Assembly: GCF_006345805.1 (NCBI RefSeq) | Contig: NW_021829938.1 | Location: forward strand, 1 to 44,100 | Length of the DNA: 44,100 nucleotides | Origin: Octopus sinensis | Lineage: Eukaryota | Direction of reading: 5' to 3' | In this document: positions 13,200-39,588 of the stretch, in pieces | How positions within the stretch are numbered: position 1 is the stretch's first letter | How the letters are laid out: each line of letters begins with the position of its first letter | Notes under the pieces: model-generated | Database searches by the model: none | What the model was told of the DNA's origin: nothing | What the model saw: only the letters and a program-made list of their open reading frames with translations | Program-made: the position numbers and the translations under genes

Positions 13200-13630
13200 C
13201 TTGTCCTGTCTTTTACTGTTTATATTTTCTACTGTCGTTACTGTCCTGTTTTTCTTACCATTTTTACCCCTCCGCAAAAAGATCTCAAATTTTATTTAAT
13301 TTGCTTTTCGCGGGAAGGAAATTTTCTATCGAAGATGCGTATCGCCTTCATCTTCGAAACGCAGAGTAGATGAAACCATGGCGACTGAAGAAGGGGGAAT
13401 GTTCCTTGTGTTATTTGTTGTTGTTGTTTAAGAAAAATGTCCAGTTCCTTGGTTTTGTGTTTATGTTTTCGTTTCTCATTGTGTTCGACGTTTTTTTTTG
13501 GTGTCCTGTACCCATATATGCATGTATATATACATGTAGAGGTAGGTAGTACACATATGTATGTATATATGCATATGTTTTGTTTATTAATTTATATATA
13601 TGTATATATATATACTTGTATACATACGAA
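13200..13630 (+). mobile_element. Family B repeat with permuted hammerhead-like motif at 13336-13391
   Basis: TGCGT-A-TCGCC...CTTC-GAAA-CGCA...GGCGA-CTGAAGA; body homologous to other family B copies. Confidence 0.7.
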
Positions 13631-14112
13631 TAAATGTATATGCATAAATATATGTAGATGTGAATGTGTATATGTATGTTTTGTACGTATGCATGTGTGT
13701 ATGTACGTATGTATGTGTAAACGTATAAACGTTTGTATGTGTGTGTGTGTGTGTGAATATGTGTACATGTGCATATATGAGTGTGTAAATGTGTATATGT
13801 GTGTGTGTAAATGTGTATACATATTCCCACAGTGGGTTTTGTTTGAAGCCCCTTGAGCAGTAGTGTAGTAGGTGCTTGATTACTGTCGGTGCAAGAAGAG
13901 GTCATATTATTATTTTTGCTCACAGCTAAGGCCATCGATTTAGCTTAAAAGAGAGAGAAAAGAACTGACGAATATGCCAACCATTTCCATCCAATACCGA
14001 GCCCTTTTGTCACTAATACTCCTTCAGTATAGCCCCGGGGACCTCATTAAGGTAAGCTGGAGAAAATAGGCTAAGCTAGAGAAAATGTCAAAGTAGTAGT
14101 GGGGATCCCTAG

Positions 14113-14533
14113 GGATTTTTTCGGTTTGAACGGCAGTTTTTTCTAGCGGTGTCATATGAAATTGTCACCCATAATTATGACCCTAGTATCGATCTATTGC
14201 ATTTCAATCTGTTTTAGGGTTTAGGGTTACGGGTGGGGGGAAGGGTATCTTTTTTTTCTTCACAAACGTAAATAAAGCCAATCTGTTTCTTAAACGAGGG
14301 ACATATTCATACGGCACAGAATGTTTTTTAACTCAATGGACATCATTGATTGGTTGAAATTGCAGAAATTGAAGAAAAAACAACAACAAATATGTTACAA
14401 ACTATAGAATTTTCTCAATAAAGCCAAGAGAAAAAGATGTTTTATAAACACATTCTACCAGTATACGAAGTTTAAAAGTGTTTAGTTACGTGGAAATTAT
14501 TTTAAAAAACTGCCGTTCAAACCGAAAGATCCC
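14113..14533 (+). mobile_element. TTAGGG-bearing TIR MITE
   Basis: Homology to 6651-7072. Confidence 0.9.
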
Positions 14534-15395
14534 GATTGCCCCCTCCCCCAAAATTTCGAGCCTTGTGTCTAGAGTAGAAACGAATAATGGAAGAGAACCT
14601 AGCTGTGGCAGCCATTAAGGGGCAAGTAATAACAGTAGCTGTAGAAGAAAGAAGAAGAAAAAACCCGTTAAAATGAAAAGAGAAAAGAAAAACCGATATA
14701 GTGTTATAGAGTTCAATGCTTCAATTATCTGGTTTCAGATTATGTCAGGGTCATAAGTTATATATGAGTATCAATGTCTTCTGTTACAGATATTCAAGGG
14801 AAAATATATTTGGAACGCAGCTAGCAATCAGTCAGTCGCTACATTATCATCAGACTACTGCTGTAACTCTGTTGCAATAATACTGTAATACGACTGCTAC
14901 GCTGCTGCCATGACCTGTCCGTCCACTTGCCCAACACGTGCTAACCTGTTGCTACCCAACTGCTGTTATACTGCTGAGCTATCGATACTCTGCTGTCTTT
15001 CAACAATTAAATAAGCTTTCACTGTGCAACAAGTCCGCTTATTCTATTGTATCTACTGCAGGTTTACGTTGACGAACATGGATTGGGGATATGACAAAGA
15101 GAGAGAGAGAGAGAGAGAGAAGGCTGTATCTACTGCAGGTTACATTGACGAACATGGATTGAGGATGTGACGGAGGGAGAGAGGGGAAGAGAGTGAGAAA
15201 GGGAAGAGAGGAGGAAGGGGAGTTAAAACAGAGGTTGTTGAGAGAGATAAAAAGAATGAGAGGAAAAAAGAGAAAAGTGAGGGAAGGATGTTGAAGGTGG
15301 GGGGAGAACGAAAGAAAATAAGAGAATATGGATGGTTGAGAGAAAAGAGAAGGAAGAGAATTGGATTATCAAATAAATTCGCTCGTTTGTCGTGT

Positions 15396-35742: not shown

Positions 35743-36318
35743 AAATATATGAGGAGTAGATAGAAAGCCGACAACTGATGAAGAGTCGTTCTTTACGTTA
35801 CTTGTCCTGTTTTCATTTCCTCCTCTCTTGTTGTTTCCGTATTGAACTCAGTTGTTTTCATATTTCATGTTGTTTACTGTTGGTGACGTCCTGTACCCAT
35901 ATATGCATATGTATATATATATACTTATATCCTTAAAAATGTTTTAGCCCGAAGGCCAATTGTATTATCTTATATGTATTGAATTTTAATGTATATATGT
36001 ATGTTATAGTTCTCGTTTTGTTGAATAAATAAGTCAACATTCTAATATCCTAAAGCTGATAAACCAACTAAATTGTTTATCCATTTTCTTATTTGCATTA
36101 TATATATATAGTAGGGAAGACATTTGGCCCGAGGTGCCACACAGAGGACTAACCCAGATAGACAGATAGATAGACAGATAGATAGATGGATGGATAGATA
36201 GACATATACAAATATAGGCCGTCAGGGACAGACAGAAAGGCAATACAGCAAGGTAGATGGATAAAGAAAGGGAATTAGTGCTGGAGGTGTGTGTGTATTA
36301 TATTCTTTTGTTCTTTTA

Positions 36319-36712
36319 TTCTTTTACTTGTTTCAGTCATTTGACTGCGGCCATGCTGGAGCACCGCCTTTAGTCAAACAAATCGTCCTCAGGACTTATT
36401 CTTTGTGAGCCTAGTACTTATTCTATCGGGCTCTTTTGCCGAACCGCTAAGTTACGGGGACGTAAACACACCAGCATCGGTTGTTAAGCAAACATATACA
36501 AACACACACACACACACACACACATACACATACATATACATATATACGACGGGCTTCTTTTCAGTTTCCGGTCTACCAAATCCTCTCACAATGCTTTGGT
36601 CGGCCAGAGACTGTAGTAGAAGAGACTTGCCCAGCGTGCCACGCAGTGGGACTGAACCCGGAACCATGTCGTTGGGAAACAAGCTTCTTACCACACAGCC
36701 ACTCCTGCGCCT
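36319..36712 (-). mobile_element. SINE family 2, full length
   Basis: Head at 36600-36712 and tail at 36319-36490 on minus strand. Confidence 0.88.
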
Positions 36713-37267
36713 ATGCACATATGAATGCATGCATGTGTGTGTGTGTGTGTGTGTGTGTGTGTGTGTGTGTGTTGTATTCATGTAGATATATAATTATGCA
36801 GATATAATTATTATTAAAGGTACTGAGAAACAGAACCAACATGCTAGAAATAGACGTCAAAACCTAAAACCACATTACGTACACCTTTAGCACTGGTAGA
36901 AAGTGAGGGAATAAATAAAAATGAATTAGCAATGTCTTTTTAGAGAGTTCTAGATCGAACGATTTCTGGCTTAACAATGAAAATTACTCTGCCTTCGTCA
37001 GTGGAATATACCGAAATAGTACATAAGTGCAAATATACAAACATACCAAATACGCACATACATAGGCATACATACATATATTCACCCGTATATACGAGGC
37101 CAATCTAGTTATTCCTCATCTCACCATGCTTTTTGATCAAAAAACTTACCGCAGTGAATATGGATTATGTTACATGCAGACCACCGATAAGATCGTTATT
37201 TTAATAATGATTTTATACTTATTTATGAATAATATATATATATATATATATATTATATATATATATA

Positions 37268-39588
37268 TTAAGGTATGTAGAAAAATACAACATGGACAAG
37301 AACGTATAACTCATAGAAGACGATACAATAAACAAGGACAGGACATTCGAACCCCTCAGTCTTCAGTCAAGAACCGGATCATCGTAGTAATTTCGGCTGA
37401 TTAATCTTGAGATTACTAGATCACGGCCAGCCCTCCAAGAAAAACTAAGCTGGAAGCGTAGATTTCCTGGAAGAAGGATCGAATGCATACGAACACCAGG
37501 ACAGTAAAAGGGACAGATATAAAAATAAAAAAAAAAACAAAAAAAACAATAATGGAATACAGAAGCATTAACGGTGAAAACAACAAGTGTCTTACGACTG
37601 ATAACAAGCAAACAAATTTTTTCTCTGGCGCATTGGAAAAAGCCTTTATAGCGGCGGACGAAGAACAACGATGTTAACACTACGAAAGTCAGGAGCTGAA
37701 AGGCAGATTTCGGCCAACAGTCACGTGACAGAGAAGGAAAAGAAAAGAAAGAAGAGAGAGAGAAAAGGGGGACAAACAACAAAGAGAGAGAAGAGAGAGA
37801 AAGAAGGAATCAGAGAGGAGAAGGGATGGGTGTCGAAGAATGACCTGTGAGTGCAGAGCGAGCGAGACAAAGAAATAGGAGGGTAGTGGAAGACTAGACC
37901 AAAGGATCAGAGGAAAGAGAAGATGAATAGAGAGAAAGTAAAAATGAGAGAGAGAGGGAGACAAACAGAGAGTCGTACCAATATTAAGAATATGTGTTCA
38001 CATTAATGATAAAGGGGGTACGGGGCGCCTGGAATATATGTTAAGGTATGTAGAAAAATACAAATGGACAAGAACGTATAACTCATAGAAGACGATACAA
38101 TAAACAAGGACAGGACATTCGAACCCCTCAGTCTTCAGTCAAGAACCGGATCATCGTAGTAATTTCGGCTGATAATCTTGAGATTACTAGATCACGGCCA
38201 GCCCTCCAGAAAAACTAAGCTGGAAGCGTAGATTTCCTGGAAGAAGGATCGAATGCATACGAACACCAGGACAGTAAAAGGGACAGATATAAAAAAAAAA
38301 ACACAAAAACAAAAACAATAATGGAATACAGAAGCATTAACGGTGAAAACAACAAGTGTCTTACGACTGATAACAAGCAACAAATTTTTTTTCTGGCGCA
38401 TTGGAAAAAGCCTTTATAGCGGCGGACGAAGAACAACGATGTTAACACTACGAAAGTCAGGAGCTGAAAGGCAGATTTCGGCCAACAGTCACGTGACAGA
38501 GAGAGGGAAAAGAAAAGAAAGAGAGAGAGAGAAAAGGGGGACAAAACGCAACAAAGAGAGAGAAGAGAGAGAAAGAAGGAATCAGAGAGGAGGAGAGGGA
38601 TGGGTGTCGAAGAATGACCTGTGAGTGCAGAGCGAGACAAGAAATAGGAGGGTAGTGGAAGACTAGACCAAGGATCAGAGGAAAGAGAAGATGAATAGAG
38701 AGAAAGTAAAAATGAGAGAGAGAGGGAGACAAACAGAGAGTCGTACCAATATTAAGATATGTGTTCACATTAATGATAAAGGGGGTACGGGGCGCCTGGA
38801 ATATATGTTAAGGTATGTAGAAAAATACAACATGGACAAGAACGTATAACTCATAGAAGACGATACAATAAACAACAGGACAGGACATTCGAACCCCTCA
38901 GTCTTCAGTCAAGAACCGGATCATCGTAGTAATTTCGGCTGATTAATCTTGAGATTACTAGATCACGGCCAGCCCTCCAAGAAAAACTAAGCTGGAAGCG
39001 TAGATTTCCTGGAAGAAGGATCGAATGCATACGAACACCAGGACAGTAAAAGGGACAGATATAAAAAAAAACAAAAAAAAACAAAAAACAATAATGGAAT
39101 ACAGAAGCATTAACGGTGAAAACAACAAGTGTCTTACGACTGATAACAAGCAAACAAATTTTTTCTCTGGCGCATTGGAAAAAGCCTTTATAGCGGCGGA
39201 CGAAGAACAACGATGTTAACACTACGAAAGTCAGGAGCTGAAAGGCAGATTTCGGCCAACAGTCACGTGACAGAGAAGAGGGAAAAGAAAAGAAAGAGAG
39301 AGAGAGAAAAGGGGGACAAAACGCAACAAAGAGAGAGAAGAGAGAGAAAGAAGGAATCAGAGAGGAGAAGGGATGGGTGTCGAAGAATGACCTGTGAGTG
39401 CAGAGCGAGACAAAGAAATAGGAGGGTAGTGGAAGACTAGACCAAAGGATCAGAGGAAAGAGAAGATGAATAGAGAGAAAGTAAAAATGAGAGAGAGAGG
39501 GAGACAAACAGAGAGTCGTACCAATTATTAAGAATATGTGTTCACATTAATGATAAAGGGGGTACGGGGCGCCTGGAATATATGTTAA
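37268..39588 (-). mobile_element. Three head-to-tail ~770-bp family A units (retrozyme-like), each with a permuted HHR-like motif
   Basis: Units start at 37268, 38041 and 38808 (773/767/777 bp); motifs at 37360-37418, 38132-38189 and 38902-38960; (TA)n on both flanks. Confidence 0.9.

Follow-up and report, generated by a model that had tools for sequence, protein, structure and literature searches.

Does a stretch of 44,100 nt from Octopus sinensis (assembly GCF_006345805.1, contig NW_021829938.1, positions 1 to 44,100 of the forward strand; hereafter the window) carry hammerhead ribozymes whose strands have been permuted non-circularly, and would such ribozymes work? The window is AT-rich and contains several repeat families in which the full set of conserved hammerhead nucleotides occurs with two compensating helices, arranged in the rare order S-G-C. 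These block names follow Eckert, Friedrich, Weinberg and Weinberg (NAR 2023, PMC10085705), who designate the cleavage-site block S, the GAAA block G and the CUGANGA block C, with hammerhead types I, II and III reading CGS, GSC and SCG. A sequence-only reading of the window had proposed a non-circularly permuted architecture shared by three unrelated families; the strand order was indeed found to be non-circularly permuted, and corresponds to 'type SGC' in this nomenclature. The motif is most likely a hammerhead-derived S-G-C pseudoknot held under purifying selection in the master copies of retroelements. Self-cleavage is plausible as judged from the sequence, and that the copies are working, probably assisted, ribozymes is a tentative reading to which we give somewhat less than an even chance.

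Crossing helices and a fixed hammerhead core

The window was scanned using a strict descriptor, III5'-U-H-I5'...GAA-III3'...I3'-CTGANGA, in which U16.1 was paired with A15.1, H17 was not G, stem III comprised at least 5 bp and stem I at least 4 bp, GAA stood directly 5' of III3', and CTGANGA stood directly 3' of I3'. Exactly six matches were obtained, three on the plus and three on the minus strand, against a chance level of mean 0.08 and maximum 1 in 200 dinucleotide shuffles of the window. Two further copies, A' and D, were recovered only when one core mismatch was allowed (CTAAAGA, G5 to A, and TTGATGA, C3 to U, respectively). The one-mismatch scan also yielded a handful of AT-rich matches, about as many as expected from the shuffles (mean 1.8), from which D was distinguishable solely through its stem lengths (7 and 6 bp). 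Between them, the two scans recovered every motif cited in the sequence-only reading, in place and on the strand given.

The B1 motif occupies 13336-13391 (+) within a family-B element at approximately 13249-13540. Its first half consists of III5' (13336-13340), H17 (A13341), I5' (13342-13346), the segment R1 (13347-13355) and GAA (13356-13358), and its second half of III3' (13359-13363), the linker R2 (13364-13379), I3' (13380-13384) and CTGAAGA (13385-13391). The A motif (17116-17177, +) is divided likewise into III5' (17116-17122), H17 (C17123), I5' (17124-17129), R1 (17130-17141) and GAA (17142-17144), followed by III3' (17145-17151), R2 (17152-17164), I3' (17165-17170) and CTGAAGA (17171-17177). 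B2, CGTGT-T-CTGTC...GAA-ACACG...GACAG-CTGATGA, lies at 21188-21242 (+) with T21193 as H17, in an element at approximately 21112-21445 (+) that has an internal 60-bp duplication. The remaining strict matches are the tandem family A motifs at 37360-37418, 38132-38189 and 38902-38960 (-), with H17 at 37411, 38182 and 38953; these three copies represent a single event. The A' motif (19130-19186, -), in an element at approximately 19021-19290, has a stem III, GCAAT/ATTGC, that is compensated relative to A, and given its CTAAAGA core the copy is probably inactive. The D motif, (AT)GCCGT-C-GAGAG(G)...GAA-ACGGC(GT)...CTCTC-TTGATGA, is present as a single copy at 27925-27973 (+; inner stem from 27927), located between (TATG)n and another short interspersed element (SINE).

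As had been claimed, the hammerhead core nucleotides stand at the correct helix junctions. CUGANGA was found directly 3' of the stem I strand in all four copies of A and in B1 and B2; GAAA was found directly 5' of the stem III strand, and a base other than G lay between III5' and I5'. The U16.1-A15.1 pair is invariant across families, the copies have C, A or U at H17, without any instance of G, and A or U at N7. The free positions of the hammerhead core consensus are H17 (any base except G) and N7 (any base), and the variation seen at H17 and N7 falls on these positions.

Covariation was evaluated using an alignment of the inner five pairs of each helix plus the core in five distinct sequences (A, A', B1, B2, and D). 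Every one of the 50 cells in stems I and III was paired and nine of the ten pairs were altered on both sides, a pairing count that is biased by the use of a pairing descriptor to collect the sequences. The alignment exceeded all 500 shuffles in percentage paired, in the count of cells altered on both sides and in covariation score; controls in which the stems were slid gave 34-42% pairing. C-GAAA and most of CUGANGA were unvarying across the five sequences. The proposed covariation of helices I and III was thereby borne out; their description as fully compensatory holds for the inner 5 bp.

Comparisons within families pointed the same way. B1 and B2 are homologous through their flanks, MAFFT placed their motifs in register when given no structural input, and five double compensatory changes separate them. 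Between the two family-A lineages, none of the 37 stem and core positions differ, compared with 157 of 816 alignment columns (19%) elsewhere in the element (P = 3.7e-4). The two linkers together show 4 differences in 25 positions. Three further family-B copies, all without an S block, were found using BLAST and nhmmer. B3 (29541-29726, +) is 5'-truncated and keeps III3', R2, I3' and CTGATGA (29573-29579); B4 (approximately 4859-5047, +) has a degenerate 5' part and keeps GACAG-CTGATGA (4912-4918) with the hairpin that follows; B5 (35749-35921, +) is 5'-truncated, begins in R2, has CTGATGA at 35775-35781 and keeps its post-core hairpin through G-C to A-U changes. GACAG, GGCAG or GACAA followed by CTGATGA is retained among these three, and CTGAWGA is kept in all five B copies, four of which were aligned (61% mean column identity) and the fifth read separately. 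The two crossing helices, I and III, are thus maintained by compensatory change, and CUGANGA, C-GAAA and U-H are fixed at exact junction positions.

Known structured RNAs did not match the motif. At gathering thresholds the whole window matched no Rfam family, canonical hammerheads of types I, II and III, HH9, HH10 and other ribozymes included, and Rfam at permissive E-values returned only low-complexity microRNA noise over the same range. A reading similar to the hepatitis delta virus ribozyme was rejected by eye, as its P1 and catalytic-C features were absent, and a C/D-box reading was rejected by eye with neither box D nor a terminal stem present.

Stem II and the rival explanations

The sequence-only reading had treated the copies as self-cleaving modules and had cautioned that stem II was not consistently formed. 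The caution was right, and the problem is more serious than it had supposed: in none of the copies is stem II statistically supported. Membership as working hammerheads was not upheld, since the validated type-SGC ribozymes need stem II together with a fourth helix and R1 in family A changes in the manner of flanking sequence. The results in this paragraph all weigh against a working ribozyme. Stem II is expected between the sequence 3' of CUGANGA (R3) and the sequence 5' of GAAA (G10.1-C11.1), and R1-R3 duplex energies were no better than those of shuffles (z of -1.0 or weaker). When 0-4 spacer and 0-3 bulge nucleotides were allowed, no copy had a best stem II helix with p below 0.19, and B2 and D were essentially unpaired; in strict register, A, A', and D formed zero pairs and B2 just one. 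When alternative partners of the strand preceding GAAA were sought on its upstream and downstream sides, Fisher p was 0.12 and 0.29, and the fourth helix, taken as the R2-R3 duplex, gave z-scores of -0.3 to +1.7. Pseudoknot-free folds were about as stable as those of shuffles (z near 0), were inconsistent between copies and included competing hairpins. In family A, R1, which should carry the 3' strand of stem II, evolves like the flank; differences accumulate in R1 and R2 as fast as in the flanks, and indels are tolerated in both. The core substitutions at G5 in A' and C3 in D add to this, and no open reading frame (ORF) for a reverse transcriptase or GIY-YIG endonuclease was found in the window. 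Every statistic rests on about four independent sequences, all within the window and chosen by a descriptor that demands pairing. Type-SGC ribozymes lose cleavage when stem I, II, III or helix IV is disrupted and regain it upon compensatory mutation (PMC10085705). By that validated standard unaided cleavage should not occur, and because no stem II is demonstrable, cleavage would probably need help.

Several local structures were considered for the missing helix. Upstream stem II partners in A (GGCUGG), B1 (GAAGA) and D (GGGAU) were rejected as non-significant, and the B1 partner abuts III5' with no linker, which by estimate makes it incompatible with stem III. C11.1 is conserved, whereas position 10.1 is C, A or U. 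The full type-SGC template is matched by B1 alone, with a stem II of CUGAAGA-A-GGGGG with UCUUC (1-nt spacer; 5 bp, 2 G-C and 3 G-U) and a helix IV, AUGUU/AAC(C)AU next to I3', matched to the template by eye. Competing structures were also seen in the B copies. A hairpin in B1 (13322-13360), formed by UCGAAGAUG/CAUCUUCGA, sequesters GAA and III5' and excludes the hammerhead-like fold. The B2 counterpart is a 9-bp helix (21175-21230) between an upstream segment and the linker, which extends stem III and, judging by linker lengths, is incompatible with stem I. The competing hairpins could be an on/off conformational choice, as in viroid hammerheads.

The rival that survives best is a motif that does not cleave, being either a non-catalytic structure (for example, for recognition by a partner reverse transcriptase, or for packaging) or a recently disabled type-SGC fossil; we regard this as a real possibility that nevertheless falls well short of probable. 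It would account for the absence of both helices required in the validated type-SGC ribozymes and for the neutral evolution of R1, and is consistent with 5'-truncated copies that begin at varied positions and not at the predicted cleavage site. It also agrees with the finding that insertion of the Penelope-like element assayed in vitro did not depend on hammerhead cleavage (Frangieh et al. 2024, PMC11167929). It offers no obvious reason, however, why all of the hammerhead-specific unpaired nucleotides (CUGANGA, GAAA, U-H) should be retained while nine of ten pairs change.

The next explanation, which we consider quite improbable, is a split-block permutation in which the hairpin directly after A9 would serve as stem-loop II and stack on the pairs G12-A9 and A13-G8, while GAAA-III3' would be delivered from upstream and the backbone would be interrupted between 11.1 and G12. 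Such an arrangement is not among the six block permutations that have been considered to date, and a hammerhead interrupted inside the G block has no known precedent. All five B copies and D (TCCCCA/TGGGGA) do have a 5-7 bp helix whose first position is +1 after CUGANGA; B4 and B5 preserve this helix with altered base pairs, and three helices and the full core would be accounted for. The hairpin is offset by 3 nt in family A, however, and the hairpins are G-U-rich and individually marginal (p = 0.05-0.28). The B copies are moreover not independent of one another, and the invariant C before GAAA would be left unexplained. On this marginal support, the post-core hairpin could be a substitute for stem II.

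Chance resemblance, in which one ancestral repeat happened to hold the pattern and its copies inflate the count, is very unlikely. The six strict matches do collapse to about three lineages, an expectation of 0.08 per window is not negligible over a whole-genome scan, and relaxed-descriptor matches elsewhere in the window are attributable to chance. Chance cannot, however, account for compensatory change in nine of ten pairs with an invariant core across lineages that have no other alignable sequence, nor for the lack of any difference in stems and core where flanks differ by 19%.

Least credible of all is a SINE head derived from a small RNA (tRNA, 5S or U2), with CTGAAGA as a relic of the anticodon loop and GGTTCGAAT as a B box: the family A sequence GGGGTTCGAATGTCC just after the core resembles a T-arm or B box, but ARAGORN finds no tRNA, Rfam searches of the A, B1, and D regions at E-values up to 10 return neither a ribozyme nor tRNA, 5S or U2, families B and D lack the B-box-like string, and the elements contain internal runs of five or more T. 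RNA polymerase III terminates at T runs, which argues against transcripts made by that enzyme. A likeness of family A to 5S rRNA and U2 noticed by eye was dropped on the same lack of Rfam matches.

Host elements and neighboring repeats

The repeats that carry the motif are non-coding retroelements, and the window contains no real ORFs. The family A element is 767-771 bp in length (TTAACATATATTCC...CTACATACC), with the motif approximately 145 nt from its 3' end. Three copies of 767-771 bp form a head-to-tail array at 37261-39588 (-) inside (TA)n, and a partial tandem at 16361-17276 (+) consists of a 64-nt 3' fragment (16361-16425) followed by the full element (16426-17276), with (TA)n on both sides. 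Family B elements are approximately 300-330 bp, are often 5'-truncated at varied points and have TATG/TA microsatellite flanks. The tandem and partial-tandem copies and the microsatellite targets support the earlier identification of the hosts as mobile repeats. Family A combines a pseudo-LTR (long terminal repeat)/tandem structure with microsatellite targets; B and D show only microsatellite flanks and 5' truncation.

The description of the families as three and unrelated can be retained in part. A and B have no homology at the BLAST level outside the motif, with nhmmer giving matches in the tails only (E of about 0.06). The two families nevertheless share their layout and insertion behavior, and D is represented by one copy, in which C3 is mutated. 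When a spurious ORF spanning family A was used as a protein query, no match was returned. A pattern scan of metagenomes gave approximately 100 matches, roughly the estimated chance number, none of them with upstream S and G blocks.

Two further features were noted in or beside the family-B elements. The segment at 13180-13258, just upstream of the B1 element (...CCTTGTCCTGTC...TTTTCTAC...GTCCTGTTTTTCTTACC), is similar to the tails at the 3' ends of A- and B-type elements, which suggests another partial-tandem (pseudo-LTR-like) junction. The tail of B2 contains the 60-bp internal tandem duplication, at 21275-21397, with 96% identity.

If the copies are assisted hammerheads, read-through or tandem transcripts would fold the core and be cut after H17, predicted on the plus strand to be after 13341, 17123 and 21193. 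Cleavage in family A would release unit-length RNAs of approximately 770 nt, and these may feed a Penelope-like or retrozyme-like retrotransposition cycle. The helper could be a protein, as reported for the Penelope-like hammerhead, or dimerization; alternatively, a hairpin directly after CUGANGA might take the place of stem II.

Other repeats are present in the window. One is a separate SINE of tRNA origin, which has clear strings for the A box and B box (GGCCCAGTGGTTAGGG...GGTTTCGATTCCC) and for which ARAGORN makes no tRNA call; it occurs at 27283-27440 (-), 1242-1395 (-), 22084-22234 (+), 7827-7920, 24171-24274 (-) and 24940-25019. A second abundant SINE-like repeat starts with cagtcatttgactgcggccatgctggagcac, is often followed by a microsatellite, and was located at 28124-28320, 36299-36489, 35542-35733, 28441-28580 (-), 33107-33270 (-) and 20212-20403 (-), plus fragments. 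Two 205-bp blocks at 39997-40201 (+) and 41788-41993 (-), each a tandem of two units of approximately 101 bp, are 99.5% identical, inverted and approximately 1.6 kb apart; they have the look of terminal inverted repeats, either from a DNA transposon or from an element resembling a miniature inverted-repeat transposable element. A tandem repeat at 43117-43781 has units of 155-171 bp in about four copies, containing GCGCGCTCG...GGGGGTGGGGGAGAGGC.

Relation to known hammerheads

Literature searches returned no report of a non-circularly permuted hammerhead in an animal repeat. The published signature of Penelope-like elements comprises copies in partial tandem, insertion into microsatellites and a ribozyme located close to the 3' end. 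Within that group, the Naiad clade (Craig et al. 2021, PMC8557442) has a (TA)n preference and a pseudo-LTR and tandem structure, and is present in cephalopods. Naiads are reportedly without canonical hammerheads and sometimes carry an 'HHR_core' or 'HHR_half_core' with halves tens of nucleotides apart that no descriptor fits. Family A resembles them in its (TA)n insertion bias and its pseudo-LTR/tandem structure, and it is from this insertion behavior, and not from sequence comparison, that we infer a Penelope-like/Naiad link. The most far-reaching reading, in which the copies are working non-circular hammerheads assisted by a protein or by dimerization (type SGC with a vestigial stem II, or split-block) and could also be the 'missing' ribozyme of Penelope-like lineages such as Naiads, we judge to be unlikely.

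If the copies cleave, non-circular permutation would belong to the ordinary biology of animal retroelements, the minimal architecture now accepted would have to be relaxed, with stem II dispensable or replaceable, and Penelope-like lineages that seem to lack a ribozyme would have a concrete candidate to explain them. Were the assisted-hammerhead reading true, non-circularly permuted ribozymes would enter animal genomes as abundant retroelement modules. If the copies do not cleave, the locus would still be unusual in keeping all of the hammerhead-specific nucleotides around two covarying helices for another purpose.

The closest architectural relative is type SGC, a non-circular permutation described as the HRIMA-1 motif from metatranscriptomes, in a study that searched metatranscriptome, metagenome and RefSeq sequences (PMC10085705). 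Its alignment reads N5-U-C^AUGU-UUA/UUCG-N5-GAAA-N5-(helix IV 5' strand)-AACAU-CUGAUGA-U-N5-N-(helix IV 3' strand). The octopus motif has the identical block order, S (III5'-U-H-I5'), G (GAAA-III3') and C (I3'-CUGANGA), and resembles type SGC in the lengths of stem III (5-7 bp) and stem I (5-6 bp), in the single unpaired nucleotide after A9 in family B and in the mutual crossing of all three helix positions. The segment from I5' to GAAA is also similar, at 8-12 nt here and 8-9 nt in type SGC; in the octopus families it begins with UU in A and B and ends with C in all. In contrast, stem II and helix IV are required in type SGC and not demonstrable here, the linker from III3' to I3' is 7-16 nt here and 4-6 nt there, stem I is not the fixed AUGU/AACAU, and the host consists of repeats in animal genomic DNA. 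The motif may either work like the type-SGC class or derive from it, and is not a demonstrated member because a defining feature, stem II, was tested and not found.

The closest biological relatives are the hammerheads of Penelope-like elements and the animal non-LTR retrozymes (Cervera and de la Pena 2014, 2020; Frangieh et al. 2024, PMC11167929), the latter being tandem hammerhead repeats linked to Penelope-like elements. Both systems place a ribozyme core in non-coding or terminal-repeat parts of retroelements, occur as head-to-tail or partial-tandem copies and have AT-rich or microsatellite targets. The minimal motifs of those elements are also incomplete on their own, with a very short stem III, and act as dimers or with protein; the Penelope-like hammerhead studied in PMC11167929 reportedly cleaves only with the protein of the element and is dispensable for insertion in vitro. 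The known motifs are canonical type I (C-G-S) and match Rfam, whereas those in the octopus window have the order S-G-C and no Rfam match, and the weak helix is stem III in the former and stem II in the latter.

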